50,528 nt of DNA, taken from positions 1 to 50,528 of the forward strand of contig NIVC01004324.1 of assembly GCA_002269645.1 (NCBI GenBank). The letters are read 5' to 3'. Each line of letters starts with the position of its first letter. The first letter of the stretch is position 1. Shown here piece after piece: positions 18,193-50,528 of the stretch. This DNA comes from Macrostomum lignano. Taxonomy: Eukaryota. The position numbers and the translations under genes were made by a program. The notes beneath the pieces were generated by a model. That model did no database searches. It was not told the DNA's origin and was given only the letters and a program-made list of their open reading frames with translations.

Positions 18193-18197
18193 AAATC

Positions 18198-26167: not shown

Positions 26168-27536
26168 ATGTCCAAGCTGAAGCCCACAAAGACCCGCAAG
26201 CTGCGCGGCCACGTGTCGCACGGCCACGGCCGGATCGGCAAGCACCGCAAGCACCCCAGCGGCCGCGGTAACGCCGGCGGCGCCCACCACCACCGCACCA
26301 ACTTTGACAAGTACCACCCCGGTTACTTCGGCAAGGTTGGCATGCGCCACTTCCATCTCAGGCGGAATCCCTACTACTGCCCGGCTGTCAACACTGACAA
26401 GCTCTGGTCTCTGGTCTCTCAGCAGACCTACGACAAGTATAAGGATGGAAACAAGGAGGGCAAAGTGCCCGTTATTGACTGCTTGCAGGCGGTAAGTCGA
26501 GTTTGAGGTTTCTAAATTGTGATTAAATTTTTTACTGGGTGTAGATGGTGCTGGATTTGAGGTGTCATCAGGTGTGCTAAATAGGTGTCAAGTGTGCTAA
26601 ATATCAGATGTCAGGTGTGCTAAATATCAGGTGTCAGGTGTGCTAAATATCAGGTGTCAGGTGTGCTAAATATCAGATGTCAGGTGTGCTAAATATCAGA
26701 TATTAGGTGTGCTAAATATCAGGTGTCAGGTGTGCTAAATAGGTGTCAAGTGTGCTAAATATCAGATGTCAGGTGTGCTAAATAGGTGTCAAGTGTGCTA
26801 AATATCAGGTGTCAGGTGTGCTAAATAGGTGTCAAGTGTGCTAAATGTCAGGTGTCAGGTGTGCTAAATAGGTGTAAAGTGTGCTAAATATCAGGTGTCA
26901 GGTGTGCTAAATATCAGGTGTCAGTTGTGCTAAATATCAGACGTCAGTTGTGCTAAATATCAGACGTCAGTTGTGATAAATATCAGATGTCAGGTGTGCT
27001 AAATATCAGGTGTCAGGTGTGCTAAATATCAGATATCAGGTGTCACGTGTGCTAAATATCAGGTGTCAGGTGTGCTAAATATCAGATATCAGGTGTCACG
27101 TGTGCTAAATATCAGGTGTCAGGTGTGCTAAATATCAGGTGTCAGGTGTGCTAAATATCAGATGTCAGGTGTGCTAAATATCAGGTGTCAGGTGTGCTAA
27201 ATATCAGGTGTCAGGTGTGCTAAATATCAGTTTGACAGGTGGTAAGCACGGGGTGTCAGACTGTCAGGTGGTAAACACGGGTTGTCAGACTGTCAGGTGG
27301 TAAACATGGGGTGTCAGACTGTCAGGTGGTAAACACGGGGTGTCAGACTGTCAGGTGGTAAACACGGGGTGTTATTAAACCCGCTCCAACCGTCATCGCG
27401 CTCGCAGGGCTTCTTCAAGGTGCTGGGCAAGGGCAACATGCCGAAGGTGCCGGTGATCGTGAAGGCGAAATTCTTCAGCAAGAAGGCCGAGGAGAAGATC
27501 AAGTCAGTTGGCGGCTCCTGCGTGCTGGTGGCCTGA
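26168..27536 (+). CDS. RPL27A: 60S ribosomal protein L27a (uL15); exons 26168-26491, 27408-27536; 150 aa
   Basis: [53 protein letters not shown]...[51 protein letters not shown]; phase-0 GT-AG intron. Confidence 0.98.
26570..27372. repeat. Two adjacent intronic minisatellites: 23-bp (GTGCTAAATATCAGGTGTCAGGT)n at 26570-27230 and 29-bp (GGTAAACACGGGGTGTCAGACTGTCAGGT)n at 27235-27372
   Basis: Direct inspection. Confidence 0.95.
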
Positions 27537-28815: not shown

Positions 28816-31800
28816 ATGCCATCCAGCAGCAACAGCCCCGGATCAGCTCGGCTGGCCTTCCTGGCCTGCTGCCTTGCCGCGCTTCTGTTGCCAGCCGTGC
28901 TCGGTAAGCGGCTTTTGAGTTTGAGGCAAGGGGGCGACACCGGTTGTGGGGGCTTGCATCAAGGACGCAACTCGTAGTTGAAGGCTGATTATTACGAATA
29001 GAATCGATTGCATTTAGGTTAGTTTTTTCGTCAGATCGTTCGGATTTTTATCCCCTACCAAGTAAGTCATTTAGTTGAGTTTCCCACTAGATGTAGGAGG
29101 TGGTTTAAGGTATCTTCCACAACCTCCAAGATGGTCGATTTTACATGTAGAGACCATGGAATTTTTGTATTTTAGGTTGTCGATTTCAATATTGAAAAGC
29201 CCGATGCTTGACAGCTTTGAAATGCGCAAATTTTTCAATGCTTACTTCAAATAAAGTTCTCTCGGCGGAGAGTCCGAGAAGAGTCAAGGCTCTTCACAAA
29301 CCCATTTCCAAAGGCGAATCCCAATCAGGTTAATCTCAATCACTTGCAGCGAGTCCCAATCACCTGCAGCGAGTCCCAATCACCTGCAGCGAGTCCCAAT
29401 CACCTGCAGCGAGTCCCAATCACCTGCAGCGAGTCCCAATCACCTGCAAGAGAGTCCCAATCACCTGCAGCGAGTCCCAATCACCTGCAAGAGAGTCCCA
29501 ATCACCTGCAGCGAGTCCCAATCACATGCAGCGAGTCCCAATCACCTGCAGCGAGTCCCAATCACCTGCAAGAGAGTCCCAATCACCTGCAGCGAGTCCC
29601 AATCACCTGCAGCGAGTCCCAATCACCTGCAGCGAGTCCCAATCACCTGCAAGAGAGTCCCAATCACCTGCAGCGAGTCCCAATCACCTGCAAGAGAGTC
29701 CCAATCACCTGCAGCGAGTCCCAATCACATGCAGCGAGTCCCAATCACCTGCAGCGAGTCCCAATCACCTGCAAGAGAGTCCCAATCACCTGCAGCGAGT
29801 CCCAATCACATGCAGCGAGTCCCAATCACCTGCAGCGAGTCCCAATCACCTGCAGTGAGTCCCAATCACCTGCAAGCGAGTCCCAATCACATGCAGCGAG
29901 TCCCAATCACCTGCAAGCGAGTCCCAATCACCTGCAGCGAGTCCCAATTACCTGCAAGCGAGTCCCAATCACCTGCAGAGAGTTCCAATCACCTGCAGCG
30001 AGTCCCAATCACATGCAGCGAGTCCCAATCACCTGCAGCGAGTCCCAATCACCTGCAAGAGAGTCCCAATCACCTGCAGCGAGTCCCAATCACATGCAGC
30101 GAGTCCCAATCACCTGCAGCGAGTCCCAATCACCTGCAGCGAGTCCCAATCACCTGCAAGAGAGTCCCAATCACCTGCAGCGAGTCCCAATCACCTGCAA
30201 GAGAGTCCCAATCACCTGCAGCGAGTCCCAATCACATGCAGCGAGTCCCAATCACCTGCAGCGAGTCCCAATCACCTGCAAGAGAGTCCCAATCACCTGC
30301 AGCGAGTCCCAATCACATGCAGCGAGTCCCAATCACCTGCAGCGAGTCCCAATCACCTGCAGTGAGTCCCAATCACCTGCAAGCGAGTCCCAATCACATG
30401 CAGCGAGTCCCAATCACCTGCAAGCGAGTCCCAATCACCTGCAGCGAGTCCCAATTACCTGCAAGCGAGTCCCAATCACCTGCAGAGAGTCCCAATCACC
30501 TGCAGCGAGTCCCAATCACATGCAGCGAGTCCCAATCACCTGCAGCGAGTCCCAATCACCTGCAAGAGAGTCCCAATCACCTGCAGCGAGTCCCAATCAC
30601 ATGCAGCGAGTCCCAATCACCTGCAGGCGATGATCAGCCACTCGTGACCTACGGGCCGCACCAGGTCAGCGCAGTGGGCGCCTCGTACGCCGAGTTTCCA
30701 CCGGTCGCCGTGAAGCTCAGCTGGTCGACGGACGGCGAGCCCAGCCTGGCCAACCAGTCCTGCAACAACGGCTTCGCCGCTTCCGACTACCTGCTGTTCG
30801 AGTTCGACCTCGCCAACCTCATCTGGGGCTACGTGATCGGCCAGGACTCGCCGGAAATCTACGTGAAGACGTTTCACCTGGCCTACGGCAGCTTGCTGGA
30901 GTCGCTGCAGACCTACGGGGCCAGCGCACCGGCTCTGCTGCCGGGCATCAACAGCAGCGACATGATCAACCAGACCTACTCGCTGCCACACGGCAGCATC
31001 CAGGCCAGGGTGCTGAAGCTCACGCCGGTGGATTTCGTTGGCAACAAGTCGATCAAGATCGAGTTCATCGGTCTGCCCGCTGGTGAGGAAAATGCACTTT
31101 TGCAGTGTAAAACAGAATTGTCGTCATGAAGCGGGAAGACATGACTTTGAGTGTACAGTGAAAGTTCAGGACAGAAATGGTAAAATCCTGTCTCACTCAT
31201 GCATATGCATGAGAAGTAAAATAAGCAAATTTGCGTATATGTAATTTAGCTAAACTGCCATATCATCCAGCCAATAGTAATTTCAGATCACAGTCAAGTC
31301 TCACATTAACGCCACTTTCAGAGTGCCCGCCGATTGAGAGATACAGACTGGTTGAGCCGATCCCGGTGCAAATCAACTCAACATCCGTGGCGCTCAGCAC
31401 TGCACACTCTTTCCAGACCGTGTTCCTAATGGAACTGTACCACCTGACCAACTTGACTCTGACGGGAGCCAACTGCACGCAGCCGCAGAAGATGACCGTC
31501 ACTTTCCTCGATGGCGCCAGCAATGTTGTGCACAACAACCTGGTGAGTTGCTCTGTTCTCAATGCGAGCAATTCAAAATGATGGCAATTACTTTTTCACG
31601 CCTTATGCGCGCCATTTCAAATTGACAGATCTTAACAATCGACCCAGAGGACGAGGCCGGCACAATGTACGCCTTGAACGGTACCATCAACGCGGCGAGA
31701 TTCAGAGTCTACTTTCAAGGCAGAGACTGCGAAAATGTGACCTTCAAACTTCATGGCTGCCTGGCAGACGGTAGGTTGCACGGCCGAACTATGAAATTTC

Positions 31801-34800
31801 CTATTTGTGTAAAATCCCGTTTTTCAATAGTTACCAATCTGGTTTCCGTTACCAGCAGCAATTCCACGGGTCAAAAATTTGCGGGATCAATTTTAAACAT
31901 GGTTTGAACAAACTGTACATTGACTTGAGCAATCTTTGACATTCGGGGTCTTTTCATCTCATGTGTTTAATCTAGCAAACTTGGAAGACCGCTATCATAA
32001 CTCATTGATTCTTTCCATCTAAAAATACACAAAGTCGATAGGAACAACAGAATTTGTCTAGAACTTTGCTTGCTCTTTGCTTGGTCTCCGAAAGCATTTG
32101 ATGAAAATTTAGCTTGATAAACTTTTAAGCGTACAGGGGGTTCCGGGCATCCGGATGCAGCGGCGGGGGGCCTTCCCGCTCATTCCGCTGACCCCTGGCG
32201 ACTACGGGCAGATCCGGTGGAGCGGTGTCTGCAGCGCGGTCCTCCAAGAGTTGGATGGTCGCTCGTCCGGTAGCCCTTAGGGAGCCGATGAGCTTTCAGA
32301 GACTCTCATTTCTGAAAACGTCGGAGAGGTCCGGGTTTGTGAGCCTGTCCTGAGACATTCACAGATGAAGTGCTCCGCATTCTCAACTCGGGAGAGGCAG
32401 AATGGGCATTCTTCACTACGGATTGCTTCCTGGAGGTAGCGATGCCTGGCAAAACAGCCATGGCTAGAGAAGGACATGCGCTTGAGTCCAAGCCCTGCTG
32501 AGGGCGGGGGAAGGACAGGGGATAGCCGCGCGGGTTGCCGGCAGTCGGGGGCGTCGATCAGCCCAGCTTGCCTTGTGTAGCGCTCCTAAGATTTTCTCTC
32601 CATCGCAAGCTTCTGCCAGTCTGAGCCTGCCGATGTGCGCCACTGTGCCACTACATTTATTGCGGATTGCAGCCGAAACTACGAAAACTCGCTTCTACCA
32701 CCATGCTATAAGTAATTAATTAGTGGAAGAGCACTTGCTGGCAAAACAGAGGTATTAAATGGATACTTCATAGGAAATATAACCACTTCATTTCGTGTTG
32801 TCCTGCTTTTTTTAAAAAAAAGCCTCCGATTTAACTCACATCTGTACTTCAGCAGAGCGAGGTTTCTCTCCCAAACTGGCTAATTGATGTGGGCTACTGA
32901 CACAGTCCAATTTAAGCTTAACAGACTGGAGAGAAAAGCTTATGGAAAATTCTAGAAGTTTTCCTACTGAAACAGAGCGACATTCTGAAGTAAGCTATTC
33001 TTGCAAGCGCACGTCATCCAACCGTGGCGCTGCGTTGCCGCACGGCGCGGCAGCTCATAGCAAAGTTGTTTTGATGGATGCACAGCACCGTCTCTTAGGC
33101 ACTGGGAAGCTGGAGCTGGCAGTCGCTGACAGTCACACGCCTTATGGCAATTAGTGGCCTGCTTGCCTGTGCTGCAGAAGCACTGACTTGGTCTGAATGA
33201 AAGGCCCTGCCTAGAGGAGAGGAGGGCCCATCTTCCAGCTCAATTGTCTTCTTTCGCTTCACGCATCATTGCGCTCCCAACCCCTCTTCCTTTTCTTTCA
33301 TTATTTCTCACATTTCGTGAGTGGTCCCCCCCCCAGAAGTCCCACCGTTCTGAACCGATCGACGAGGGGGCCGGAGGCGAGGGGACGATTCCAAGACTCT
33401 TCTCAAGCCTGAGGCTAAGAAGCGACAATGCAACAGAAAAATTTGGTGGAAAAATGTAAAGGGAGCTGCAAAGCTACTCAAAAACCTTGAACTGATGCAG
33501 TCAGCGTTAGCTGAGAGGACAGTTTTCAGCGGCTATGGGTTCTCCAGAATCTTCGATGAAAGTCAAGGCAAAATCCAGCGCATTCTGCCTCTGGCCTGTC
33601 TGCCTTGTTCTTTCTCAAAGCTGCCGGCTGCTTAAAATTATGTGCTGGTCCCAACCACCCCACAGAGTGCCCCGCCTCGTCCTTCTACTTCAACGGCCAG
33701 TGCTACTTCGCCGCCAAGCAGCCGCCGCAGCACCGCGTCCTGGGCCAGCAGCTTTGCGCCGGAATCCGCTGGATGGACAGAGGCCGCCTATTCCTGCCGC
33801 GCTCCTTCGAGGACAACATCATCGTCTCCATGGCGGCCTTGCAGTTCGCTGGGTCCCTGACCAGCGAGTTCATGGTCCACCTGGGCCTGGTCAGGGACGG
33901 CAGCGGCTGGGCGATCGAGGGCAGCCCCTCCGCGAAAATAAAGTGGAGCTTCTGGGAGCCGTTCCAGAGCCAGCCGGAGCACACCTTGGCGCTGGCCAAC
34001 CTGAGCCGCATGAGCTGGTGGGGCTCCACCAACTCGACCATTTCCGCCCACGTCATTTGCGAGGTCACTGCCGGTGAGGCCTGAAACACGCGATACGCGT
34101 TATTAGTGCATCTCGGAATCTCTCAGATCACCGAGAACGTCTTCTACTGGTAATTTTCACGAGCTAAAACACCCGCCACTCTACTTTTCTCAGCCCGAAG
34201 GTGGAACCGCAGCTGCGATGAGCCGTACTTCCTGCCCACACTGGACCGCTACTACCCCACTAGCTCGCACGAGGTGGCCGGCTCCACGCCAGAGAACGTC
34301 TCCTTGTTCGAAGCGGTGAAGAGGTGCCTTGACGGCTCTTTCGTGGCCGACTGCAACTATGTCCGGCAGAGCGGGCAGCAGTTCGTCCTGACCAAGAAGC
34401 CCGAGAGAGACTTCCATGCCTTCAGCAACGAGGTTCTGAACAGCTCCGTTGGAGTTCTTGTCTTCTGCCGGCGTGAGACCCGCACTTTACCGATATTATT
34501 TTATTATATTATTTTATAAGCCATCTTGGCTCAGAGGGTTGGGGATCCAGAATGGATTGAAAAGTAAATTCAACTCAAGTTTTTAGTCACGCGATTTGCC
34601 ATCATACAAGAATGCTCTCGTAGGTCACCTTTGGGTCGTTCATATCACGGTAGATAATTGCTTTACATTTTAAACCTAAGATACGAGTACAAGAGCAGCA
34701 TTGGCACGAAAGGGGACGGTAGCAACCCTAAACCTAAAAAATAAGAAAGGCAGAAAAAAATACTTTGTACTGTTAACGCACTGCCAAAGTTGCACGTCCA

Positions 34801-37800
34801 ATCGATCAGCGACGCGGTAGCTAAGGCAGCAGGAGTCTTGTCCTCCACAGGCCAAGGCTGGGTGCCGTAGAATTGCACCAGAAAGAGTAGAAAATGCCGA
34901 AGGTGGGTGAGCGCCCGTGAGAGCGGGTCACTGAGCAGCTGCCAGGCGCCCTGCATGTAAAACTCACAGAAGCTGATGTTGTGCTTGAGTGCAGCAAGAG
35001 TGGCAGTTTGCAAGTTTGCAGCAGGGTCATGATGGCTGCGTTGCCACCGCCGCGCTGTTTTCCAGGTTTAGGGCTATCCGGCTGTTCTCGAGCCGCTCCT
35101 TCAGCAGGGTCATGATGGCTGCGTTGCCACCGCCGCGCTGTTTTCCAGGTTTAGGGCTATCCGGCTGTTCTCGAGCCGCTCCTTCAGCAGGGTCATGATG
35201 GCTGCGTTACCACCGCCGCGCTGTTTTCCAGATTTAGGGTGATCGGTTGTTCTCGAGCCGCTTCTTGAACATGAAGATGGCCACCAAATCTGTCTTAATT
35301 TATTTGCACCTTGGTGCAAGTAAATGCCGCGACCTCCGAGTGGTCAAGGCGATGAGCCGCGCTTAAATGTTGCGGCGGCCAACAGCGGCAGGACCAAGCG
35401 AGGGCAGCGGAGCGAGCGTCGGCGTGTTGAGCGTCGGCGTGAGCGAAATCGGCGCGGTTGGCGACATGGTGATGCCCGTCGAGCTGCTGCCGCGCTGGCC
35501 CATACGGATCTTCTGGGGCCTGGGACCGAGAGGCTTATCTACATCGAGCCCCAGCCGTACCACAGGGCACGCTTTGGCACGGGACGCTGAACTGCCGCAC
35601 GCTCAAGGCTGCCTGGTGGAGAGGGGCTCTGGCAAAGCTAGCGCTCGACCTAAGCTGTGACGTCACCGCACTGCAGAAGGTGTCTATCAAGGCTGATCCG
35701 GGCTTCACTGTGAGGATCTGGGCGCCGGATGGACCCTCTACTACACATTGGCGGACCAACGAGATCGTGGAGGAGTTGGAGCGCTGGTCGGACCGAGGCT
35801 GTAGCAGAGCTGTCGCTGCGTCTCTCTGTCCCCTCAGCTGCTTTGGATCGACGTCCGGCTTCGAGGCCGGAACGCTCGCCTGTTCTGCGCGTATGCGCCC
35901 CCTTCCACCCGTCCTGATGAGGCTCAAGACTTCTTCGAGCAGCTTTTGGTACAGGTGGAGGAGGCAACGGCGCAGCGTGACACAGTGATCATCCTTTGTG
36001 ACCTGAACGTGGTTTTGCGTAGGTCCGAGCGGTCACTGTTCGTCACACTGCGTGAGAGCGGCAAAACCGGAGCGCTGGAGGACTTCCTAGAGAGGCAGGA
36101 CATGGTGTCGACCAACACCTGCTTCCGCAAGCCGCTGGACAAGCTCGCAACTTTTGTGGGCTACAAGCGCAGGCGGCGGAATGCGTGAGGCCGGAACGCA
36201 ACACGGAGGCAGGCACAGCTCGATCATGTGCTGGTGCGCTTCAGCGAGCGCCGCCGCGTCATCAATTGCCGCGCCATCACGCACGCCTCTGGCTCTGCGG
36301 TCCGATTATCGACTCCTCGTCTGCGACCTTCGTCTTCGTGATCCACTCTACCGTCCGCCGAAGCGGCCACCGCGGCGCTACTACCACGCACTCAGGGACG
36401 CCAACAAGCACAGCTGCTTTGCTAGCGCTTTCATCACTGCGCTCAGCGGCAAGCATGGAGGTGCCGAGTACGCGGAGGTGTGCGCTTCAGTTCGAGCCGC
36501 CGCGAAACAAGCAGTCCCGCTGATGCGACCGGCCCAGCGGGGGCAGCCGGTATGGCAAGACGACTCCGCGATTCGGCAAGCGAGGGAAGAGCTGTAGAGA
36601 CTCCTTTTGAGCAGGCGACCAACCCGCGTGGCAGAGGAGGTCTTGGCGGCTGTCTATCTGCAGCGCCAGCAGGTTGCTGTTGATGAACCCATTCGGGCCA
36701 TCTCTGCCGCTCGGCCCGATGCCAGAGGTCGCGTGGCCTGGTCGGCTATCAATTTTCTGACGGGGCGAAAGCGGCGCATTCTGCTAAACCTGGCAGGCGA
36801 TTCTGCGGACCAGCGCAGGAACGAGCTGCGTGAGTTCTTCGCCGCCATTGTCAACGCGCCGCCAGCCCCTCTGCCAGCCAGACAGTCTGACGCTGCCGCT
36901 GGAGATACCGTTGCCGGCAGAGGAGAGCTTCAACCTAGCACCATTCAGCAAAGCCGACGTTGTGAGGCTCGCCTAACAGTCACCGGGCGGGAAAGCGTTG
37001 GGTCAGGATGAGGTGCTCATCGATGCGCTGTGCATCCACTGTGTGGCCAGTGAGGTCGAGAGAGATCGCGTGCTCTTTGGTGAGGAGGCACCCAACGAAA
37101 TGACTACGGCGCACATCGTCGCAGTTCCTAAGAAGCCGGGCACGACGAGGCTTGAGGAGCATCGAGGTATCTGCCTTCAGTCCTGATCTTTGAAGTTGGT
37201 CAACCGGATGCTGTTATCGCGGTTTCAGCCGGTGCTGAATCCGTACCTGCGTCCTCAAGCTACATCATCCGTGCCGAGTCGTACCGCCCACAGCCGGTGC
37301 AGGAGGTGCTGCACTCAGACCTGCACTCGGCGTTTCATTGACTGCCTGCTGGCTGACGCCGGCGCCCCGGATTCGGCCGGCGGCGTGGTGTTCATTCGCG
37401 ACCTGGCCTGTGACGCTGAAAGCGTATTCTGATGTTATATGGCCACTAACTGTAGCGCTACTTTTTGTGTTGCCATGCTCGTCTGCCAGGCGGCCTGCCG
37501 CATCATCATCGAATCCAACGAACACGAAGTCGCTTGGATCTCCCGATCGGTGGACTATGATGCCGCCACCCAGCTGAAAGGCGTCCGTCTCCATGAAAAC
37601 CAGCCAGCTCGGTCGCACCCAGAGACGGCCACATGGAAAGGTGGGTAGCGTCTGCAGCCAACAGTCCAGCTGAGCGCGGAGCCCGCTACGGGGATCCGAC
37701 GATGATGTCGACGATGATGTTGATGGCGTTGGTTACGTCAATGAGAGCTCGCGGAAGCCTTTGCTGTGCCTGTTAGGGTTAGTAGGGTTAAAACTAAATT

Positions 37801-40800
37801 GACGGCCCTTTGACTTGTTCAATTTCTACAACAGTACCGGGTGCGGAGCCTCACAGACGTGCGCAAAATTGTAAGGTTGCCTCTGGCATCTGTGGCTGCT
37901 GTTTGTTATATCTATTTCAATGTTGGGCTTGCTCTGATGGCGAGCCAAGTTGATTCTATATATTTTCTCGCCCTGTAGGCTTTAGGTCAGGGCCATATAC
38001 TTACGGTATTATCATCTACGCCATCTCCCCTTTCCAGTCATTGTTCCTTATTTACTCAAGAAACTGAACTTTCGGCTGCCCAGTCGGCTGTACTGAAACC
38101 GAACTGGCGGGATATTTTTGTCGACCTGGCACTAACGCGAGGTCTCTCCGGTGGCCTCTGGTCCTCAAGTCTCTGATTGTCCGTTTGGTACGTTCTTGAT
38201 TCACCAGCTTGTTAGTCGCCTGTTGCAGATAATCGGCGTTCCATGGTAGTGTTGGCCGGACGAAGATACGATTGCTATGATGGCGAGCTTGCTATTATTC
38301 GGTCATTAGCTAGCTTGATCAGGTAGTCGCGGTGTTTGCCTACCTCCACCACCACGCCCCTCCGTTGCCACAGCTTGGTTGTCGGGTCTTGTAGAACCAT
38401 AGTCGAGCCAATTCTGATTCGGCCAAGACTCTTCTACAGAATGCCTTCTGCCATCCTGCCCTTGTCTATGTCGTTGTTTCGATAGTCCCAAGATCCTCTG
38501 ATAATCTTCTTGGCAGACTTAACTGCGGATTCAGCCCTTCCATTGCTTTGGTGATGGTAAGGTGATGAGAATCTGGACTCAACTCCCCATCTCTTCAGAA
38601 AATTTACAAAGACGTTGGCTTTGAAGTGAGAGCCTGAGTCTGACCAGAAGGATTCCGGTACGGCTGTCTGACGAAATAGCTCACGGCATGCATTGATAAG
38701 CTTGTAAACCGGAGCGTTTTGTCCGAAACTCCAGACGTTGATCCAGCCTGAGTAGCAATCCACTATCACTAGCAATTGCCTGCCGCGAAATTCACAAAAG
38801 TCCGCGTGAACTTCCTGGAAACACCTTCCTGGCGGATTTCTCTGCATCATCGACTCTCTGGTTTGACTTGGCCGGTTTTTTCTTGGCATGCCTTGCATTG
38901 TTTTATTGTGTCATCTATTTGACGTTCCATGCCGGGCCAATAGACTGTCATCCTTGCTCTTGCTTTGGTTTTAGTAGCACCTTGATGACTCGCGTGCAAA
39001 GTTCTCAAAACTTCTCTTTGTATTTCTTTAGGAATTATGCATCGACATCCATTGAGAATGATCCCATCTTCGACAACGAGCTTATGTCTGGCGTGCCAAT
39101 ATGGTCTTAGATTAACTGGCAGATTAGCATTGTCGTTTGGAAATCCATTTCCATTCTCGATAACTCGGATAAGGTCTTGCATTTCTGCATCATTCTTCAC
39201 TTGTTCTTGTAGTTTCTTCATGTTAACATCAATTTCCGTATCTTCTATTGCCATCATAAGTAAATTCACGCTGCTTACCGCTTGACTCTCGTCAATCTGG
39301 TCTTCCTCAGTCGCATTTGCAATGGGGACCCTTGATAGTGCATCGGCGTCTTCGTTGTCTTTGCCTCGAACCCATCTAGCATCATAGTTATAACGATTAA
39401 GCTTGGCGCGAAGGCGCTGTAACCGTGGGTTCTCAATTTGGTCCAGTTGATAGCTATTTAGGATCGGAATAAGTGGTTTGTGATCAAGACAAATTTCTTA
39501 TTTAATGCGATTCCGCTCTCGTCACATCGATTAAGAAATTCACGAACAGCTTGGACGTGGCTGTCGTAGTCGGCGCTTGCAACTATGCAGTCGTCCACGA
39601 GTATTTTTAAAACCCTGCAGAACACTGTCCAGTCTCCTGTTGTAATATTCAGAGATAGAGCTGATGCCAAAAGGTGCCATTCGAAACATATACTTCGTCA
39701 TTGTCACGGCTGCCGTTTTCCCTGCCGTTGACATGCCAGAATGAAGTGTCGTTGGCGCTGATCCCATAGTCCGAAGGATTTTCTGGTCGATGCTCTGCTT
39801 CGTTTGTGTGACTGAAAAATCAACAGCTTCAAAATGCAAGTTGGTCTGTGCCTCACCTGCACAGCATTCGATTGACTTCTCCCCATGTTCACTATGCTAT
39901 TCAATCAGCAAGTTTTGAAGTTTTGCAGTTTTACCATTTAATAGAGCAGATGTGCAAGGAGTTGGGGATAAACTTTCAGCTCCTTTGCAACAACTCTCAT
40001 ACACGTAACTCTGAATTTCAGCATCTAAAAATGAGAACGCCTTCGAGAGCTTCGAATCAATCACCAAAGTATCGAATCCCGTCGTGAGCACAGCTGGGTT
40101 GCCCCTGCAGGCCGATGGCTTCTGGACCGGCGCCCGGCTGACGGTGAGGACAGGGGCAACTGGCAGTCTGGGTTTAAACAAGGACATTTAATAATAGTTA
40201 ATAGCAATGCTTGCAATCTTTTTAGATGACACTGACCATGAAGAGCATACTGCATAGCATTTTGATGCTTAATTACATCCCGAACATGCTTTTTGCTGCT
40301 GAAGATCTTAACTTTAATCTGGAGTTTTACAACTACGATACCAAAAAATGGGACATGACTTCAAATGATTTGAAAACTGGAAACCCGGTGAGTTTTTGAT
40401 TTTGATTTTAAAAGGGGATGTCAGCTCAGTCCGAAAATAAAAGCGGCTTATCGAAGCGAGGGCTCTCTGCCGGAGTCCAGTATTGAACAGACAGTGGGAA
40501 ATATGAGATGAGTAAGAGATGAGTCAGCTTATGGCCCTCTTAAATGGTGTTTTTAATGGTGGTGGCCACCATGGCTGAGGCAGTTCTGTGCTAGTGTACA
40601 TGCCCTGACTTTCTAATCTTCAGGCATATGCACTCTCTGAGCTTTGGGGTTTGACCCTCAGGGGTGTGAATTGCACGAGAGCGCCAGGAAATTTTCAAAC
40701 ACGACCACCAAATAACTGTGGTAGCGTACGGAATCGAACCAGGTTAGATATTAGATATATATTATATTATATTACATTATATTATATAGCACAAGCCTAG

Positions 40801-43800
40801 AAATTAAATGCATTGTATTCGGGAGTACTGCGGAAGTACAAGATTTGCTAGCAGGAAATCTGCTTGCCAGAAAGTTTCAAAGTTTGCTGCCAAGGATTTT
40901 GCTAATACTTCATGTGTCCTTCACTTCTTTTTAATTCTTAAAATTACTCAAATTCCGCACTTAAATACAAGCTTCTAAGCCTTCTTAGCATTCCAGTGCT
41001 CATTGAAAAACACCAAAGGCTATATAATGTAGGTTTCTTAAATTTGACAGAAGTTTGTCAAAGGTTAAAACCGGATTTATCTAGCTAATAAACAATTTCT
41101 TGTAATTAGGCTTCAGAGAAGGCTTGACATGAAGACTTGGCATTCAGATGACGGGTCATTATATGTACTTTTAGCACCATTTTAACGTACGTTTAAAATA
41201 TTTGACAAAACAATGTCGTCAAAGCGTCTCTCAGAGTGTCATTTACTAAATGGCTTCCAAAATCAATTAAACTTCCAATCACTAAACGTGCACCCGTAGA
41301 AACAAAACTTAGAAACAGGGTGGTCGTGAATTCTGATGCCAGTGAAGCTCAGGCCTGATATGACTGAGTTTGTTGCAGCCGAATCAGGAGCAGGGATGGC
41401 GACAGACTCTTCTTCACCAATGACAGTCGAACCAAGATATGAAATAGAGATTGGCGCTTCTCCACCAGTACGCAACTGAAGAGCCTCGGAAACAGCTGCG
41501 CTGTTCTGCAGTGAGCGGTCACGATGCTTCGCCAGATATCGTCGTGTTGTTCTTTCTGAGATCTGTCCGGTAACAGACATTATGTCGGCCAGATTATGGC
41601 CAGCAGCTATTTTATACATGAATTACCTTAATAATTAACGCAGTTTTTTAGTAACTAAATAAAACATAATACTGATCTAACACTTATGATCTAATAAGTG
41701 TTCGTATACGCTTTCGACAGCCCGACTTTATCGCTAAGATTAAGTATAAATCGCTGCAGGTAGTTATCACCGCGGTTTTGTTTCACGGTTAACGTAACGT
41801 TTCCGTCGCTAGTAGCCAACAGCCTCGGAAAAAGATGATCGCCCTTAGTTTCTTGAGGCAGCAGATCCTTCCTACGTTAGCGGTCTCATAGATTCTGGCC
41901 TGCTTGTTGTCGCCACGTGATTTCGCGGGAAATTAGCGGGAGCTTAATGATGATGGCAAGTTGCATCCCACACTGTGTACACTCGCTAAGTCTATATATT
42001 TCCCTTTGTTTCACTTGCGGGTATTCTACGAAACCAATCTCCTCTGCCATGGACAAAAGCGTTACAGAATGTAACCTCAATGTTTTTTAACAGTAGAAAG
42101 ACCATGGGGGTGTATTTCAAATACACACATTTTTCTTTTGTCTGGATCTCCAAAAATATTCAACCAATTGCCATCAAAATCCTGAACACGGGCTAAATTC
42201 CGCTCTATTCGATGAAGCAACTCCAAGAATCACGAAAAATCGGCATCGTCGAGATATCCAACGATTCTCCTCGGGGTGTCCGGTGGCAAAAACCACCAAC
42301 ATTGGCAAATTTTTTCTGTTCACAAAATCTTATCATGAAACCACGTCGGCTCAGGAAACTATGCATATCAGTCGTAAAGGCCTTTGTTCTCAGCATCCCA
42401 GGAACTAGGGTCCCCTTCATCACCGTCTGGAGCATCGGCGGCGACCGTCGGGACCTTCAACAAAAGCACCCGATCGGCATCGCAGAGACGGCTGCGTTCC
42501 CAAAACTGAACTGGAAGAATCCTCTTCTGCATGCAGCATTCAGTCAGTAGACATAATCGGTGAATGAAATGGACGACGGCGACCCTCTAGGTTGACCTGT
42601 AGACATACAAGCGACCTTCGGGACCTTCAACGGAGTGCCACCACGCGGCCCCGACGAACTGGCACCCCCAACATCGTGAATTTTCTGTCAAGGCACCAAA
42701 CCAGGCATGTCTGCATATTATACAATGGTCCTGCACCATGTTCAGTATTCAGCTCTGTCTGGACGACCTTCGGGACCTTCAACGGAGTGCCACCACGCGG
42801 CCCCGACTAGCTGGCACCCCCAACATCGTGATTTTTCTATCAAGGCACCAAACCAGGCATGTCTGCATATTATACTATGCTTTTGCACCGTGTTAAATTG
42901 GAGAGTTGCAGATTTAACTGGCGACTGAATAATATAAAATATTTTTAATTTGTCAAAAATGATATTACAGCAGGTCAAAAATGATATTACGGCATGTCAA
43001 AAATGATATTACAGCAAATTCAAAGCAGAAGGATCTGAACACTGACACATAGACACAAAGGCTGAGTCAATTGTCACTATTTAATTTGGTGCACAACGTG
43101 GGCAGTAATGGTGACGATCACTGTCTCTTCCATGGCAGTGTCTTCGGCAAATTCCTTCGTCACACATGCAACACTTCCTTGTTGTCGCACTCAAGGCACG
43201 CTTCTCATCCTTTGACTTTTGTCTCGCGCATGTTGCACAGTGCTTTCTGGCACCAACTGACACCACAGCCACCGCTTTGCGTGCCTGTTCCTTCATTTGC
43301 TCGTCGTTGATTCGACAACCTGCGAGCTGGAACATCAGCCTGTGATGATTGGACAGATTTTGAAGAAGAGCGGCCGATTGCGAGCGCTCCTCGATCAGAG
43401 GTTGCAGAAGTTGCGCAGCCGCATTGCGCTGGAACTCGTTGCGATAGTTCGGCGAGGCGCAGAGCTCCGGGTGCGCCAGTCTCCAGATAGCAGCGGCATT
43501 CACAGCTGCTATGTTGAGTATGCCGCCGGAGAAGATTGCCTTCTCACATGAGTCGGACTTTCGCTTGCAGTCGGATGTGCGGAATATCCTGTTGCAGGTG
43601 TCCGTGCCACTCTTGGTAGAATTGTAGTACGAGCCTATTGCTACAGGCTTGCCATTGGGAAGCAATTGTCTGTCGTGATGCATGGTGGACAGCAACATCA
43701 CGTTTCGGCCCGCTTTGGGCCAGTTAAATCTGCAACTCTCCAATTTAACACGGTGCAAAAGCATAGTATAATATGCAGACATGCCTGGTTTGGTGCCTTG

Positions 43801-46800
43801 ATAGAAAAATCACGATGTTGGGGGTGCCAGCTAGTCGGGGCGCGTGGTGGCACTCCGTTGAAGGTCCCGAAGGTCGTCCAGACAGAGCTGAATGCTGAAC
43901 ATGGTGCAGGACCATTGTATAATATGCAGACATGCCTGGTTTGGTGCCTTGACAGAAAATTCACGATGTTGGGGGTGCCAGTTCGTCGGGGCCGCGTGGT
44001 GGCACTCCGTTGAAGGTCCCGAAGGTCGCTTGTATGTCTACAGGTCAACCTAGAGGGTCGCCGTCATCCATCTCATTCACCGATTATGTCTACTGACTGA
44101 ATGCTGCATGCAGAAGAGGATTCTTCCATTTCAGTTTTGGGAACGCAGCCGTCTCTGCGATGCCGATCGGGTGCTTTTGTTGAAGGTCCCGACGGTCGCC
44201 GCCGATGCTCCAGACGGTGATGAAGGGGACCCTAGTTCCTGGGATGCTGAGAAGAAAGGCCTCTCCGACAGATGGATCCAGATTATTGAGCCAATATGGA
44301 TTCACTATAAAGGTTTATACAGTGTAGTGTTGGTTGTCCTTGCCACCAGTGTCTTCGACAAGAATCGTTGAATATCTCGACGATGCTGACGTCGGATGAC
44401 TTTGAAAGTTAATTCGTTGGAAAGGGGGGAAATTTTGACCCAAATGGTGGACTTTTACGAAAATCGGTTATTCGGTTTGCGAGCTATGGTGAAATTGGTT
44501 GTGTGTATTTGTTATACACCCCCATGGTCTTTCCCCATGGGGAAAAAAAGCGTAGTCTTTCTACTGTTAATGGCATTCCTTTAAATTCATAAAATAAAAC
44601 ATGAAAATCACAATTTAGCAAAAAATATTTATTACCCGAGTTTAGAATGAATAGCTATATAGTTGTTATAGTCGATGGTGCTGGCTACCACCCGATTATT
44701 AATTTAACGAAATTTATCGTGGTCAGTCCGCAAAAAGTCTAGTCTATGACAGTGAAGGCCGTCAGTCCGTTTTTTGGTTGCACTTCATTCATGAAGCATG
44801 GATACCGCGCACTCCATATTATTGTGCTTCGATGGTCGATGGGGCCGTAATTTTCATCGATACCCTCGTGCGACCAGCTTTTGTACCTGCAACCTCTTTG
44901 CTGATCTCTCCTTCCACTAGACGCGTCATGACGTTTATCGCAAGCAAGCTATGCTGTTAGTGAATCGACCTTCAGTTTAAATAAAACCAATGAAAATTGG
45001 CTTCAGTACCAAAAATATTATTATTATTAAGAATATTAGGAATATTATTAATTTATTCTTCATTGACTAAAAAGTGACTTCAACAGAGAGCAGAGAGTTG
45101 GCTTTAATCGCATGTCCTGAAACTCTGTTCCAGGCTCCAGTAAAGATACCGAAGTCGACAATTTTCACCCCGGTGTACTACCTCATCGTTAACCTGGCCT
45201 ACACGGACAAACTGCGGTTGACGACAACATGGGATCGCAGCTTAGGAATCAAAATGGATCTTTTCGTCCGAGCGAAAAACCTAACAGGCAAGATGCCAAA
45301 GCTTGTAATTGCTTCCATTATTACCAGCAACATAAATTCATAATTAATTCTGACCCTCAATTTACTGTTTGGCAATACGCTTTGCAGAGATTAATCAGGC
45401 AATCTGCAATGGCACTCAATCAGTAACGCTCGAGCACCCCTACCTCGGATCCGCCACCCTGCCTTGCTTCCGAAACTCCCTGGTCGTGTACCAAAAACTG
45501 TCCCCGAACCTGGAGACCGGACGAACCCCAGTCGACTATCGCACTGGATTCGCTCTGGACCGACCCGCCATGGACTTCAACTTCACGCAAGCTGACCAGA
45601 TGAGCTTCTGGACCGGACTCGACTTCCTCGAGCTGCTGCCGACATACTTTGCGAGTCAGTGGCCGCTGACACTGAGGCTGGAGGCCACGAACTCGCAGGG
45701 ACTCGGCAAGTATGTCGAGTGCAAAGAGTGGTGGGTCGGGTCTCGAGCGGGCGGCTACCCGATGCACGCGAAAGACTGCCGGACGGGAACTCTGGACGAG
45801 TACACCTTTGTTGAGCTGAACAACGCTCAGTTCGGCCTGTTCTCAAACCTGTCTTGTGCCCAGCCGCTCTCACCGTGGTGGCAAAGTCAGTGCGATGGCA
45901 AAAATCTTGTCAAGCTGGCAGCAGATTCAAATGGAGCTCCTCGATGGATGCCAGACCTGCCTGCCGACAACGGTGTGTCGGTTCGAATGCGGCTGTTTGC
46001 GCCGAAGATGATCCCAAAGGGTGAGAAACACACTGTTTACACTCAAAGTTGCGTTATATAGCTAGACTCTCTGGTTCATTAATTATTGCTCAACTCATTT
46101 GCCTTTACCTATCTCGATTCGAATTCAGCAACAGAATCAGGCCAGGTGAGCGATGCGTGCACTATGGATGCCGAGTGCTCAAGTGAGAATATGACCGTGT
46201 GCATTCCTCGTGGCTCAGCGCTCACGCCTCAGTGCGGCTGCGCGAATCTTCAAGACCAGGGCCAGCCAGTCTGCACCATCACGGTGGACATGAGCATCGT
46301 TGCTTTTAACGTTACTTTCGACCCAGTGCCGGTTCGCGGCTGCGCCAGTCGGTACACGGCAACAATCCGTCTGAAGCACGCAAGTGGCAGCGCCGACATT
46401 CCAGAGGCTGCTCCGCCAACAGTTCTGGCGAATTTTTTCTCTTACTTTCTGAACAAGTCGTCAAGCGTGTATCCTCCAGTTGACCAGGAGTTTTACCTCC
46501 AACACAACCCTGTGACTGTCATTGAAGGCAACCTGCAAGGCTCATATAAGCTTTATGAGGAGTTTGAGTTCGTCATAACCGCCAACTTCACGATGCCGGA
46601 AGGAGGCCAGTGCGTCTCAGCGTCCTACCTGTGCATCGGCTTCAGCGCGTCGGAAAATGAAACGGTGCGCGACTCCGACCCGACTAATAACGCTTTCTGC
46701 ATGGACATTGACAGCGTGAAGGTGTGTCAGCCAATAGGAGACACGGAAATATCCAATTTTACATTGTTCCATTTGAGTCCGAATCCTTTGGTGAGACATG

Positions 46801-49800
46801 AAAATGTTTCCGTGTCGTACCATCTCTCGGTACTCGTTAAGAATCTCAACAGCCCTATAATGAGTTCAGAGTATGAAAACAACTTTATGGCACTGTTGTA
46901 TCTGGTAACAAGTGACTGTCAGAATCTGGAAGGCAGTGAAAGCCAAACTAAACTCTGCCTGTCCAATTCTGTATTTAACGTGGAGTTGAAAACCACAAAC
47001 GAGTCAGTGTTCAAGAGCGGGTACACTAGCGGAGACACTTTTTCTGTCAGCGTCCACGCTCCACTTTTTGAAATAAGCCAAAATCAGTGCAACAAGACGA
47101 CGCATTTCTGTGTCCTGCTAACGAGTTCAGTGAACTCGTCCTACTCGGAGAGCAACATCAGCAACAGCTTGGCATGCCATCCGGTTGAGACATTTTGCAC
47201 GATTAGTAAGTTCTCGCAAAGGATTAAATTGTATTTAAAGAATAAGATTATAAATACGTTTATACATAACAGCCTCGCGCAATCTTGGGAGGATGGAACT
47301 TTTGACTTTTGCTTAGAATGCATTTGGATTATTGATATAGTTCTTTGTTTTATAGATTGTCGAAAAATTATTCAATCTATCCCGTAAGTAGCTAATTGCA
47401 GAAAGCAATAAATTTGATTTCAGTTTCGGACGCTGCGCTGGAGACTGTAGCGCTGCTTCCCAATGCAACCGACCCGTGGGTTCCGGAGTATCGCCACACC
47501 GCGTCTTTCTCATTTGGAGTTCGACTGCTCAGCGGGTCGAAGATCGACCCCGTGCTGTCTCCCAGCATCAATTTCGAACCCAACATTTCATTCCTATTTC
47601 AAAATGCATCCACTGCTCCGCTAGTTATGGAAGGAATCAACTGCATCGAAAAGGATCGAACTCAAGGAATTCAGCTGGTCGGTCAGATTGCCAATGTTAT
47701 ATGCGATGCTGCATTCCTATTAACCTTCCAGCAGTGCACGACGGAGCAGGTGACTTTGCGTGTTGGGATGATCAATTCCGACAATCCGAGCTACGTGGAC
47801 ACAAATTTAGAAAACAACTGGAAGGACATCACAATATCAAAAGTTTTTGATTGCGCAGGTAAGGTTTGCTGTGCCCCTCCTTTAACTCATTGTTAGTAAT
47901 ATCCCAGGGTAAGAAAATCTATGAACTAAATTATAAAAAGAGATTAAATTAAAATTTCAGGTCTTAAAATTACTGGGCCAAAAGCAAAGAATCCGCAATT
48001 TACTTTATCTAACGTCGCGGCTACTTTTGAGCTCTATTGGATTTCCGGCACCTACATGGATTGCGTCATATTCATCCAGGACGGGTACAACGCCACATGG
48101 AATTGGAAGCGAAATGGAAGCATTGACAGCTACCGCAAATATAGATTTACCGTCAGTCACGTGCTAAATCAGCCGTATGGCGAATACTTAGTTAACTACA
48201 GTTGCAGCAATGAAATAAGCCAATTTGAAGAAACAAAACTTATCCTGGTCAGTCCGAATCCAGCCAGCTTGTTAAACATCACAACTTCGTACGAGCGCTT
48301 GCCGGAACCAAACAATGTTACCTTTGTATTTGGTACGCTAACTGCAGCTCAAGGATACTTAAAACTAAACTGTACCTTTACCTTTTATTCAGGCGCAGCA
48401 CAATCTTATCAGGACATCAAATTTTACTTTGAAGTTCCGCTTAGCTTTTCTTACATCTATCAACCTGGAAAATCGGTTGTTACATCAAATGTTCGCTGCA
48501 CAAACCCAGGTGGTGCGTACTCGAAAAACTTTGAGCTTCGGCTCTACACACCATTTGAAATCGAGGGCGTTGAAATCAAAATCAATAAATCTGTATTGCT
48601 CACAAGTGAGCAGTTTCCACTGCAGCTCACTGTTCAAAATGGTACTGATGTCACCTACACGGTGAACATGACTGATGGTACAAGCCAAGTGATTGTGCAT
48701 CCTGAGCCTGTGTCCTATGCACAGCCCATTAACATCACCCACACATTCAATGCTCCTGGAGTTTATGACATCCACGTTCTGGCTTCTAGCCCAATGAACA
48801 ACGAGAGCTCAACTGTATCAGGAATTCTTGTGCAGAATCCTATCGCTGCAGTGGCTCAGTCGGCATATTTTCATACCGCAACACCGACCATTTACTTTCC
48901 AGTGACCCACACCGGAGCAGTACCTACAAATGTGAGCTGCAAAGTTAACCTTGCTGCAGGACCACAGTTCAGTCTACTGAATCAGTTCCAATACGTTTCA
49001 GCATCAAAATCCACTGAAACTGTGACTCTTGAGTGTCCTCCGCACCTCATTACTGAGGAAATGACTCTGTCAGTTCGCTGCTGGAATCTAGTGAGTCAGT
49101 ACGCAAAAAACTCAACAGTGGTGTGCAATGAGCCAGTGTCAGGACTTACAGCCAATGCCAGTCACGTGTTTGTCCAGCCTGGTCAAAACTTGAGTATTAC
49201 CATACGAGTGTCCAATGGAACTTCAGTCGAATTCACAACAAGATTTGCTGACTCCACCCAAACAGCGTTACCTTTCACCCGAGCAAGTACGCCTCGAGCA
49301 ATGAGACTGTGCTGGCGCACTCGTACTCAACTGCAGGAAACTACACTGTTATAGTCAACGCCTCGAATCCAGTGAGTTGGCAAACAGCTCAGATCAGTCC
49401 TATCGTTGTACTGAATCCACTGGTCAACGTATCCGTCACCTACAGACAAAGCGTTCTGTGGCCGTTTGAGGGGGCTGAGTTCGTCATCAACAATGAGCCC
49501 AATATGCAAGCTGGTCTCGTTGTTTGCGATTTCGAGTTCTCTACATACGGATCGAAAAGAATCTTCATCGAAAACCTGACGGACAGCTCAAACGCAGTTG
49601 TGACATTCGAATATTCGGTAGAAGCCATTGGAACTCAGCGTGTGAGCATGAGCTGCTGGAACCCATTGAGCATTGATGGTCTCGAGCGGAACTTTTCAAT
49701 AGTTGTGCTCAAGGACTCTGTAAAAATAGCCAACTTTAGCACGAACGGGACGGTTTGGCTTGGCACGCCGGTCGAATTCGTGCTTGATATGACAAGTTTC

Positions 49801-50528
49801 CCAAACGATACCTGCATTCACATGTACTACAATCAGACCAGCCTAATTAATGAAATTTTCGGTGGCGCATAATTCCTGCCGTTCCATCGCAACACCGAAC
49901 AGTCCAGCCTATACACAGGTCAGTCCCTCTAACTTGCGAATCACCTGGAAGCGAGATCTATCAAAAGTAGGCGTCCATTCTGTCTTGATTTTCGCCTACA
50001 ACAATGTGAGCAATGAATCGGCGCAAACATTTGCCACCGTGATTGACATCCTTGCTACAAGCCAAGGCTGAGACTGTTACTCGGACTCATCTTCATTGCA
50101 AGTGTCATCAGTGCAGACAATCAGGAGGTGAGCAAATCAACCTCACTGCCGTGGCGCCATACAACTGCTCCAAGCTGACCAACATCAGCACATACTGGAC
50201 CATCATTGCTGAACAATCATCTACCCAGCTTCCTCTGTGCACTGACAACTCCGATCAGTGCTTGGTTCAGCGTCGGATGTTGCCATACGGGCTGTACAAT
50301 GTTCTCATTCACTGCCGAGCTGACTGTGGATGCTGCTATGGCAGAGACTGCGTGATATTGCTGAACGTTCAAGACTCCATTGAGTCTAGAAGCTATTACT
50401 GGTCCGGAATATGTTTCATTCAATCAACCTTCGTGCTAAATGCGTCTGCGACGGCCACGGACTTTGACGTGGAAGATGGAGATCTTAGCGGCATGACGTT
50501 TCAGTGGAGCTGCTTTAGCCTGAAGAGT
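28816..50528 (+). CDS. Polycystin-1-like (PKD/REJ) multidomain protein, 3'-incomplete; exons 28816-28903, 30627-31082, 31322-31542, 31629-31770, 33666-34073, 34194-34472, 40022-40143, 40226-40387, 45134-45287, 45388-46020, 46129-47205, 47424-47858, 47961->50528 (last exon has apparent frameshifts)
   Basis: Hydrophobic signal peptide (RLAFLACCLAALLLPAVLG); F5/8C-like modules ending IKIEFIG and FKLHGC; C-type lectin (CYF...LC...W...HVIC); Cys-containing PAN-like exon; fibrinogen-C-like (FWTGLDFL..L...LRLEA...WWQSQC); EGF-like; PKD repeats (THTFNAPGVYDIHVLAS, AHSYSTAGNYTVIVNASN); REJ-like start (LPYGLYNV..., FVLNAS...DFD...FQWSC). Phases are consistent across all junctions. Exons 7-9 are less certain. 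Confidence 0.8.
29335..30626. repeat. 20/21-bp minisatellite (GAGTCCCAATCACCTGCAGC / ...CTGCAAGA)n ending exactly at the exon-2 acceptor of the PKD1-like gene
   Basis: About 60 units; the last unit's CTGCAG is the functional acceptor. Confidence 0.95.
32110..32650 (-). mobile_element. 3' fragment of a non-LTR retrotransposon (C-terminal CCHC-like zinc knuckle)
   Basis: SHGCFARHRYL...CPFCLSRVENAEHFICEC resembles the GHG...CxxC...HxxxxC motif at the end of LINE ORF2. Confidence 0.65.
35019..35265. repeat. 83-bp tandem repeat x~3
   Basis: Units start at 35019, 35102 and 35185. Confidence 0.9.
35300..37725 (+). mobile_element. Degenerate RTE-like LINE (APE endonuclease + partial RT)
   Basis: GTLNCRTL, NTCFRKP, QLDHVLV and LRSDYRLL (endonuclease); AHIVAVPKKPG...HRGICL...KLVNRMLLSR (RT N-terminal domains); GATGAT-type tail at ~37700-37725; many stops, frameshifts and an internal deletion. 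Confidence 0.75.
37771..38035 (-). mobile_element. Probable 3' LTR (38023->37771, TG...CA) with polypurine tract GGAAAGGGGAGA (38035-38024)
   Basis: PPT immediately followed by TG, downstream of the Gypsy integrase on the same strand. The CA end position is less certain. Confidence 0.6.
38290..39845 (-). mobile_element. Ty3/Gypsy (Mag-like) pol fragment: RT, RNase H, integrase; internally deleted
   Basis: RMAPFGISS...VDD (RT); DHKPL...RLQR...DADALSR (RNase H); HASHQG...VYWPGM...CKAC and VHADF...SDSG...SNGRAESAVK (integrase). Domain order is RT-RH-INT. Confidence 0.9.
41263..44969 (-). pseudogene. Degenerate Crypton-like tyrosine recombinase (DUF3504-like), apparently intron-containing, interrupted by a piggyBac
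   Basis: Fragments YxPSTI (~44800); PLKNIEVTFCNAFVHGRG (in frame only when joined across the TTAA); ARIYE...IC; LLP...HLFPRL; GDNYLQRFILNLSDKVGLSKAYTN..SVRS; AAGHNLADIMSVTGQISERTTRRY. These resemble the RG...TNHSLR...TGHxS...Y motifs of Crypton recombinases. Stops and frameshifts are present. Confidence 0.6.
42091..44566 (-). mobile_element. piggyBac-derived element with TTAA TSD, internal deletion and large internal inverted repeat
   Basis: TTAA at 42087-42090 and 44567-44570; TIR CAGTAGAAAGAC (compare T. ni piggyBac CCCTAGAAAGATA); asymmetric internal IR AAAGACCATGGGGGTGTAT. Transposase C-terminus at 43081-43720 (VMLLSTMH...GKP...YNSTKSGTD, plus Cys-rich CxxC...CxxC...C...HC...CxxC domain). 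Confidence 0.9.

Follow-up and report, generated by a model that had tools for sequence, protein, structure and literature searches.

Polycystin-1 (PKD1)-family proteins act together with PKD2-type channels. Their ectodomain contains REJ, with PKD (Ig-like) repeats ahead of it in many members though not in all; a GPS/GAIN autoproteolytic site precedes the first transmembrane segment, a PLAT/LH2 domain comes after that segment, and there are up to 11 such segments, joined in some members by a C-terminal TRP-like channel domain. The heads of these proteins are variable and lectin-type (C-type lectin, SUEL, EGF, and WSC) in both sea urchin and human: in the sea urchin members SpREJ1-10, the REJ domain is preceded by a changing set of C-type lectin, EGF, SUEL lectin, WSC, and PKD modules and followed by GPS, PLAT, and 1 to 11 transmembrane segments, and the ectodomains of PKD1, PKD1L2, and PKD1L3 are reported to carry a C-type lectin domain (PMC1934368). 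In planarians, pkd1L-1 is needed for chemosensory and pkd1L-2 for mechanosensory behavior, ciliated sensory neurons express both along with pkd2 genes, and the pkd1L genes need pkd2 genes for chemo- and mechanosensation; a complex N-terminal ectodomain is regarded as a peculiarity of chordate PKD1 (PMC11448475). Here, we analyze a stretch of 50,528 nucleotides from the flatworm Macrostomum lignano (contig NIVC01004324.1, referred to below as the window) in which a split gene on the + strand, at positions 28816 to 50528, on balance probably makes up the first two-thirds, from the 5' end, of a single gene encoding a membrane receptor of the polycystin-1 family (PKD1-like/REJ).

Like the SpREJ proteins, the predicted flatworm protein would place a lectin-type head on a PKD/REJ stalk. 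It differs from them in that the text of PMC1934368 mentions neither discoidin nor fibrinogen-related modules, in that no canonical C-type lectin, SUEL, or WSC domain is detectable in it, and in having three repeats of ~150 amino acids and several cysteine modules without known relatives. With human polycystin-1, PKD1L2, and PKD1L3 it shares PKD repeats and REJ, and residues 2363 to 2597 of P0003, a near-identical public M. lignano protein, match polycystin-1 structures; in contrast to the human proteins, the flatworm gene shows no detected LRR, WSC, or LDL-A domain, another N-terminal head, and far fewer recognizable PKD repeats (three by sequence). The best functional analogy is found in Schmidtea mediterranea pkd1L-1 and pkd1L-2, likewise flatworm PKD1-like genes with REJ and PLAT; a long modular head in the Macrostomum gene would, however, go against the view of a complex ectodomain as peculiar to chordate PKD1.

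Results

Gene structure

Open segments and splice sites delimit 13 exons, listed here together with the minisatellite of the first intron.

28816-28903, + strand: exon E1, with start codon, signal-peptide-like N terminus MPSSSNSPGSARLAFLACCLAALLLPAVLG, and phase-1 donor G/GTAAGC.
29337-30626, no strand assigned: minisatellite of intron 1, 20-nt unit, ~64 copies, Tandem Repeats Finder score 2217.
30627-31082, + strand: exon E2, phase 1-1, discoidin (F5/8 type C)-like module.
31322-31542 and 31629-31770, + strand: exons E3 and E4, together a 120-amino-acid four-cysteine module with no fold assigned.
33666-34073, + strand: exon E5, phase 1-1, a 135-amino-acid module, C-type lectin-like by eye, without the C2-C3 cysteine pair.
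34194-34472, + strand: exon E6, phase 1-1, a 92-amino-acid four-cysteine module.
40022-40143, + strand: exon A, phase 1 to 0, a new exon within the 11-kb interval between E6 and E7.
40226-40387, + strand: exon B, phase 0 to 0, tentative, with AG/GTGAGT borders and an open frame.
40624-40720, + strand: exon C, phase 0 to 1, doubtful, with splice borders and an ending (LRGVNC) as in other modules.
45388-46020, + strand: exon E7, phase 1-1, putative divergent fibrinogen-related domain (FReD); the public models P0003 and P0004 begin here.
46129-47205, + strand: exon E8, phase 1-1, six-cysteine EGF-like knot, then repeats R1 and R2 (~150 amino acids each).
47424-47858, + strand: exon E9, phase 1-1, repeat R3 (~150 amino acids).
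47961-50159, + strand: first part of exon E10, a run of Ig-like repeats with at least three recognizable PKD domains.
50160-50528, + strand: continuation of E10, the first ~120 residues of REJ, cut by the end of the window.

Every module boundary is in phase 1, E2, E5, E6, E7, E8, and E9 being 1-1 exons and E3+E4 and A+B+C being 1-1 sets that are divided by phase-0 introns. Such phase-1 boundaries are the classical signature of shuffled extracellular modules. All exon borders are AG/GT, and the spliced sequence from 28816 to 49255 reads as 1,805 codons without a stop. The junctions E2/E3, E3/E4, E4/E5, and E5/E6 are reproduced in the independent M. lignano models P0001 and P0002, and the junctions E7/E8, E8/E9, and E9/E10 in the likewise independent P0003 and P0004, which argues that the split-gene coding structure is real. 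An earlier reading of this DNA from its letters and open frames (the sequence-only reading) had given the same coding structure, from the start at 28816 through the exon end at 46020, and had pointed to an exon-shuffling signature in phase 1; its coordinates proved accurate, and the signature is found at each module boundary.

The ATG of E1 is the only one after an in-frame stop at 28753; the encoded N terminus has a hydrophobic core, called a signal peptide by eye, and splices in frame to E2. This exon is missing from P0001 and P0002, which translate part of the intron-1 minisatellite as a false N terminus. Every unit of the minisatellite carries the 3'-splice-site-like sequence CACCTGCAG, and its last copy is the E2 acceptor, with which the end of the array coincides. 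Farther downstream, E8, which is fully (100%) covered by P0003, has tandem acceptors 6 nt apart at 46129 and 46135 (TTCAG/CAACAG/), and P0003 and P0004 take the upstream one, adding Ala-Thr.

By BLASTP, the sole close protein matches of the region are predicted M. lignano proteins with 93 to 96% identity. A0A1I8JIH8 and A0A1I8GE02 match its 3' part and A0A1I8H751 its 5' part, all of them near-identical outside model artefacts, and by this comparison they represent this very gene or else a copy of it, allelic or recent. These public fragments are separate, incomplete proteins, none of which has exon 1, exon B, or exon C; exon A occurs among public models only in the paralogue A0A1I8GES3. The automatic names given to A0A1I8H751, A0A1I8GF32, A0A1I8GK20, A0A1I8GET8, and A0A1I8GES3 (LysM domain, protein kinase domain, TECT1, lipocalin, and transferrin-like) misfit their sequence or Pfam content. 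In a further model, the paralogue P0005, blocks of 92 to 100% identity to the window gene alternate with blocks of 32 to 68%, forming a mosaic; in window coordinates, the P0003-P0005 mosaic corresponds to ~45830-45980, 48510-49410, and 50010-50528. This pattern suggests gene conversion between PKD1-like paralogues, or else chimeric assembly or gene models.

Family membership

Membership of the predicted protein in the PKD1/REJ (polycystin-1) family is well supported by sequence comparison. Pfam PKD (PF00801) matches E10 at 7.8e-15 (three stretches) and 3.7e-7, with the domains at ~48566-48814, 49142-49392, and 49678-50026, and an iterated hidden Markov model search on P0003 and P0005 places three PKD units at P0003 residues 917-999, 1109-1192, and 1288-1403. 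The start of REJ reaches 21.3 bits in Pfam (E 1.2e-4, raw frame) and misses the cutoff of 25, since the window end truncates the domain and frameshifts interrupt it; positions 50160-50528 align to residues 1450-1572 of P0003, within its REJ, which puts the end of the window near residue 1572 of that protein, ~120 residues into the domain.

P0003 (UniRef A0A1I8JIH8, 2,608 amino acids) has ~99.7% amino acid identity to the window from E7 (45388) on. In Pfam it matches REJ at 1.5e-47 (441 of 452 profile positions), PKD at 8.7e-23, and PLAT at 5.2e-9, and its residues 2363-2597, which hold the first transmembrane segment and PLAT, match the human polycystin-1 structure 6A70 at 4.4e-18. The polycystin-1-family identity holds because the 3' part of the gene is nearly the same as this protein with its PKD, REJ, and PLAT domains and its match to human polycystin-1. 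The transmembrane segment and PLAT lie beyond the window and apply here only if the locus continues like P0003. Several PKD domains, a REJ, and a polycystin-1-like identity were all part of the sequence-only reading, and each of them is supported by these searches.

Modules of the head

For E2 to E6, a homologue profile was made from P0001, P0002, and the exon translations and searched against 1.8 billion representative proteins. Six proteins matched, among them three M. lignano paralogue or frameshifted fragments, one repeat artefact, and P0011 (XP_028414250), from a soft coral, whose four F5/8 type C domains are genuine (Pfam F5_F8_type_C x4, 3.7e-93). E2 matches P0011 at 1.3e-7 in this search, at 3e-8 by BLASTP (32% identity, E2 residues 72-148), and at 3e-5 when it is compared by hhalign with a profile of the four P0011 repeats. 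A discoidin-like module in E2 is supported by these comparisons.

Pfam PF00754 (discoidin) gives no match for E2 or E3+E4 at E ≤ 10, nor for exons A to C at E ≤ 1. By hhalign, E3+E4 and A to C reach only 0.27 and 0.68 against the discoidin profile, and neither shows any likeness to E2. E3+E4 is 42% identical to the paralogue fragment P0007, with 4 of 4 cysteines kept. An AlphaFold2 model of E2 to E6 (P0001, 9-row alignment) has a predicted local distance difference test (pLDDT) score of 30 and is unusable as a structure; Foldseek matches of this low-confidence model (mixed beta-sandwich folds overall; beta-sandwich and galactose-binding-like for E3+E4) serve as a hint only.

Motifs in E5 recall a C-type lectin by eye (CP..F.G.CY.F, HLGL, W..QPE, and ICE), and E5 may be a very divergent C-type lectin-like domain. 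It has no match to Pfam PF00059 and none by sequence in the PDB at E ≤ 10, and the PROSITE pattern PS00615 is absent because one of the two canonical disulfide pairs (C2-C3) is missing. E6 is 43% identical to the paralogue P0008, with 4 of 4 cysteines kept, and has no Pfam match at E ≤ 10. Searched by sequence against the PDB, the E2-E6 profile, E5, E6, and E8 returned either no match or spurious ones (FlgE, ubiquitin, and KinD), those of E6 being to ubiquitin.

It is likely, from sequence and from a model, that E7 is a divergent FReD. A phmmer search of the PDB finds 1FZD, fibrinogen alphaEC, at E 0.0037 over residues 31-177, with the motifs FW.G.D.L..L and C...WW...C..NL aligned. The single-sequence AlphaFold2 model of E7 is poor (pLDDT 43.9), and we used only the enrichment of FReDs among its matches: 37 of the 50 top PDB Foldseek matches are FReDs, including FGL1, angiopoietin-1 and -2, ANGPTL3, ficolins, and fibrinogen (best E 5e-3, template modeling [TM] score ~0.33). 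Foldseek also uses amino acid information, and the two lines are not fully independent. Pfam Fibrinogen_C (PF00147) gives no match to E7 at E ≤ 10, and none is precomputed for P0003. In E8, the six-cysteine spacing of the knot is its only EGF-like trait, as there is no Pfam match at E ≤ 10 and the PROSITE patterns EGF_1 and EGF_2 are absent. R1, R2, and R3 likewise have no Pfam match at E ≤ 10; their C-terminal ends can be aligned in register, though weakly (hhalign 0.002-0.004).

The lectin/discoidin/fibrinogen ectodomain of the sequence-only reading is therefore reduced to one discoidin-like and one divergent fibrinogen-related module. In Pfam all of the 5' domains fail, and by the refutation rule that the reading itself had set, failure in profile searches, most of them fall; deeper tests recover two of them: the first F5/8C, in E2, by the match of its C-terminal half to a genuine discoidin domain, and the fibrinogen C domain, in E7, by a weak match to 1FZD and a FReD-rich Foldseek list. 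Two further F5/8C-like domains, read in E3+E4 and in A to C, show no discoidin likeness, and the C-type lectin of E5, the PAN-like domain of E6, and the EGF-like assignment in E8 did not survive the profile, pattern, or structure-database searches. Three cysteine-containing repeats, as had been proposed for E8 and E9, are plausible in view of the in-register alignment, which Pfam does not back.

The interval between E6 and E7

The interval at 34473-45387 holds the proposed exons A to C and a transposon remnant recognized by Pfam.

38434-39269, - strand: retrotransposon integrase remnant (Pfam rve 1.1e-11, Integrase_H2C2 1.2e-16).

The M. lignano paralogue P0008 runs unbroken from its E6 homologue into its exon A homologue (VLVHCR...AAGLPLSGSGYWKG in exon A, VLVFCR...TAGLPLQADGFWTG in P0008), and E6 is therefore not the last exon. 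Measured against stop-free intronic segments as the null, the codon score is 0.165 for exon A (p ~0.03) and 0.142 for exon B (p ~0.04), whose other frames are negative; no homologue evidence was found for exon B. Enumerating alternative exons across 34.5-45.4 kb gave no convincing substitute for exon C, and the high scorers at 35.4-36.0 kb fall in a GC-rich stretch (35.3-37.7 kb). This stretch, at 35300-37700, has long open frames, looks retrotransposon-derived by eye, and has no Pfam match. Both halves of the gene, E1 to E6 and E7 onward, have paralogues in the M. lignano genome.

Frameshifts in E10

The end of the coding sequence in the window is interrupted.

49256-50517, + strand: stretch with ~10 single-base frameshifts relative to P0003.

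Aligned to 49101-50528 with frameshifts allowed, P0003 shows 10 single-base indels and only 5 amino acid substitutions in ~430 codons, and there are no indels in the preceding 3.9 kb of coding sequence (45390-49255). Nearly all of the indels sit in short homopolymers, which they lengthen or shorten, and most are deletions. The stretch overlaps blocks that are near-identical between paralogues; the sequence-only reading had passed over the ~10 frameshifts without remark.

Neighboring features

One gene lies directly upstream and bounds the 5' end of the receptor gene.

26081-26503 and 27333-27533, + strand: RPL27A (uL15) gene, last exon Pfam 6.4e-13.

Exons at 3848-5463 (+ strand) resemble, by eye only, the mu subunit of clathrin adaptor AP-2. 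Several long arrays, minisatellite or low-complexity, at 1100-2500, 12600-14400, 17150-18200, 23100-24700, and 25000-25800 form repetitive open frames on both strands and coincide with strong GC and AT skew.

Discussion

Our results indicate that the 5' and 3' halves of the coding sequence likely belong to one gene, a view that rests on the DNA sequence and its paralogues. E1 to E6 have a signal peptide (by eye), no stop, and no membrane anchor, and the 3' half has neither a start nor a signal peptide; the E6 donor and the E7 acceptor are both in phase 1 and thus compatible. Also in favor are the coding scores of exons A and B, the end of the upstream RPL27A gene near 27533, and the paralogues that both halves have in this genome. 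We consider it unlikely that two adjacent genes are present instead, in which case E1 to E6 with A and B (perhaps with C up to a stop at ~40798) would encode a secreted multi-module protein and a separate PKD1-like gene would follow, its first exon or exons lying unrecognized in ~40.8-45.4 kb or being supplied by trans-splicing. Such a division would fit the public models, of which P0001 and P0002 end exactly at the E6 donor and P0003 and P0004 begin exactly at the E7 acceptor without Met, as well as the 11-kb length of the interval and its transposon remnants. However, P0003 and P0004 start with Ile at a phase-1 acceptor and are therefore N-terminally incomplete, the upstream models carry no stop, P0008 shows E6 continuing into exon A, and the phases match across the gap. 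Moreover, a membrane receptor needs a signal peptide, that of E1 is the only one seen, and no exon with Met, a signal peptide, and a phase-1 donor was found in 40.7-45.4 kb. Several other points weigh against a single receptor gene with the proposed head. All public models stop or start at 34473-45387, and exon C, though needed to reach phase 1 before E7, has a codon score of -0.119, the null (intron) level, in a frame that is open to the stop at ~40798 and could end a separate upstream gene. The GPS, the full transmembrane region, and a channel-like domain would lie beyond the window, P0003 ends soon after PLAT, and Pfam GPS gives no match in P0003 at E ≤ 1. As for the head, Pfam gives no match at E ≤ 10 for any of the 5' module translations (E2, E3+E4, E5, E6, E7, the EGF-like knot, and R1 to R3), the discoidin match covers only the C-terminal half of E2, the N-terminal half having discoidin-like motifs by eye only, and the evidence for a FReD in E7 is weak (E 0.004; pLDDT 44, TM ~0.33).

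These Pfam results also favor the idea that the 5' modules are lineage-specific, cysteine-bearing, beta-rich modules without lectin ancestry and that their domain labels are largely pattern-matching by eye. This is a possibility to which we give appreciable but lesser weight: E3+E4, E5, and E6 matched only M. lignano paralogues among the 1.8 billion proteins, and hhalign links neither E3+E4 nor A to C to discoidin, but E2 does match a genuine discoidin repeat at 1.3e-7, and E7 recovers fibrinogen-related domains both by sequence and by Foldseek. A different doubt concerns the integrity of the copy in the window, which might be a recently inactivated duplicate, or pseudogene, of the A0A1I8JIH8 gene with real frameshifts. 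Ten frameshifts inside 1.27 kb would be in keeping with inactivation, and duplicates could come from the several PKD1-like paralogues of M. lignano, whose mosaic of near-identical blocks suggests that copies are still exchanging sequence. Neutral decay, however, would yield many more substitutions than indels, whereas there are only 5 amino acid changes in the stretch and at most a few in the preceding 3.9 kb; the indels are of the kind expected from long-read consensus errors, in short homopolymers and mostly deletions, and no other exon is damaged. Given the ratio of indels to substitutions and their setting in homopolymers, we rejected a pseudogene as the main explanation and regard it as very improbable, and we hold with considerable confidence that the frameshifts are assembly (long-read consensus) errors rather than gene decay.

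If the exons do form a single receptor gene, its product would begin with a signal-peptide-like first exon, and after it modules with phase-1 introns at their boundaries would line up as follows: one that is discoidin-like, then three with cysteines but no assigned fold, one divided among small exons within the 11-kb intron, a divergent FReD, an EGF-like knot, three repeats of ~150 amino acids, a PKD/Ig-like stalk, and the start of REJ. The near-identical P0003 goes on into the rest of REJ, the first transmembrane segment, and PLAT. By analogy with the family, the protein would be exported and anchored by its transmembrane segments, the distal discoidin and FReD modules would bind a ligand outside the cell, probably a glycan or a component of the matrix, and the PKD/REJ stalk would pass this signal on to a TRPP (PKD2-like) partner channel in a sensory cilium. 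The likeliest role is thus that of a sensory-cilium receptor whose discoidin and FReD modules would bind an extracellular glycan or matrix ligand, a role drawn from the lectin-type heads of the PKD1 family, its PKD2-type channel partners, and the function of planarian pkd1L genes. The ciliary chemo- or glycan-sensing function put forward in the sequence-only reading likewise stands as an analogy.

The receptor gene is already in UniProt as fragments, and both the family and the principle of a shuffled ectodomain are well known; specialists are unlikely to be surprised, since variable, shuffled ectodomains have already been described for the PKD1 family. In the literature, we came across neither a polycystin described as having discoidin or FReD modules nor any work specific to M. 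lignano polycystins, and the combination of discoidin and FReD with PKD/REJ may be new. For annotation, our analysis means that the public models of this gene are fragments in which the true first exon is missing, an intronic minisatellite is translated, and automatic names mislead, and that the assembly probably carries indel errors in the REJ-coding stretch.

Whether all exons from 28816 on belong to one transcript, which would encode a polycystin-1-family receptor with a head of discoidin, FReD, and Macrostomum-specific cysteine modules, appears evenly balanced to us. If they do, exon shuffling would have remodeled the recognition head of the family to suit a lineage-specific ligand, and gene conversion between paralogues would keep parts of the stalk identical. 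The single-gene model, if true, would add two recognition modules, discoidin and fibrinogen-related, to the known set of PKD1-family ectodomains and would provide a candidate ligand-sensing polycystin in M. lignano, a tractable flatworm that is transgenic and amenable to RNA interference.

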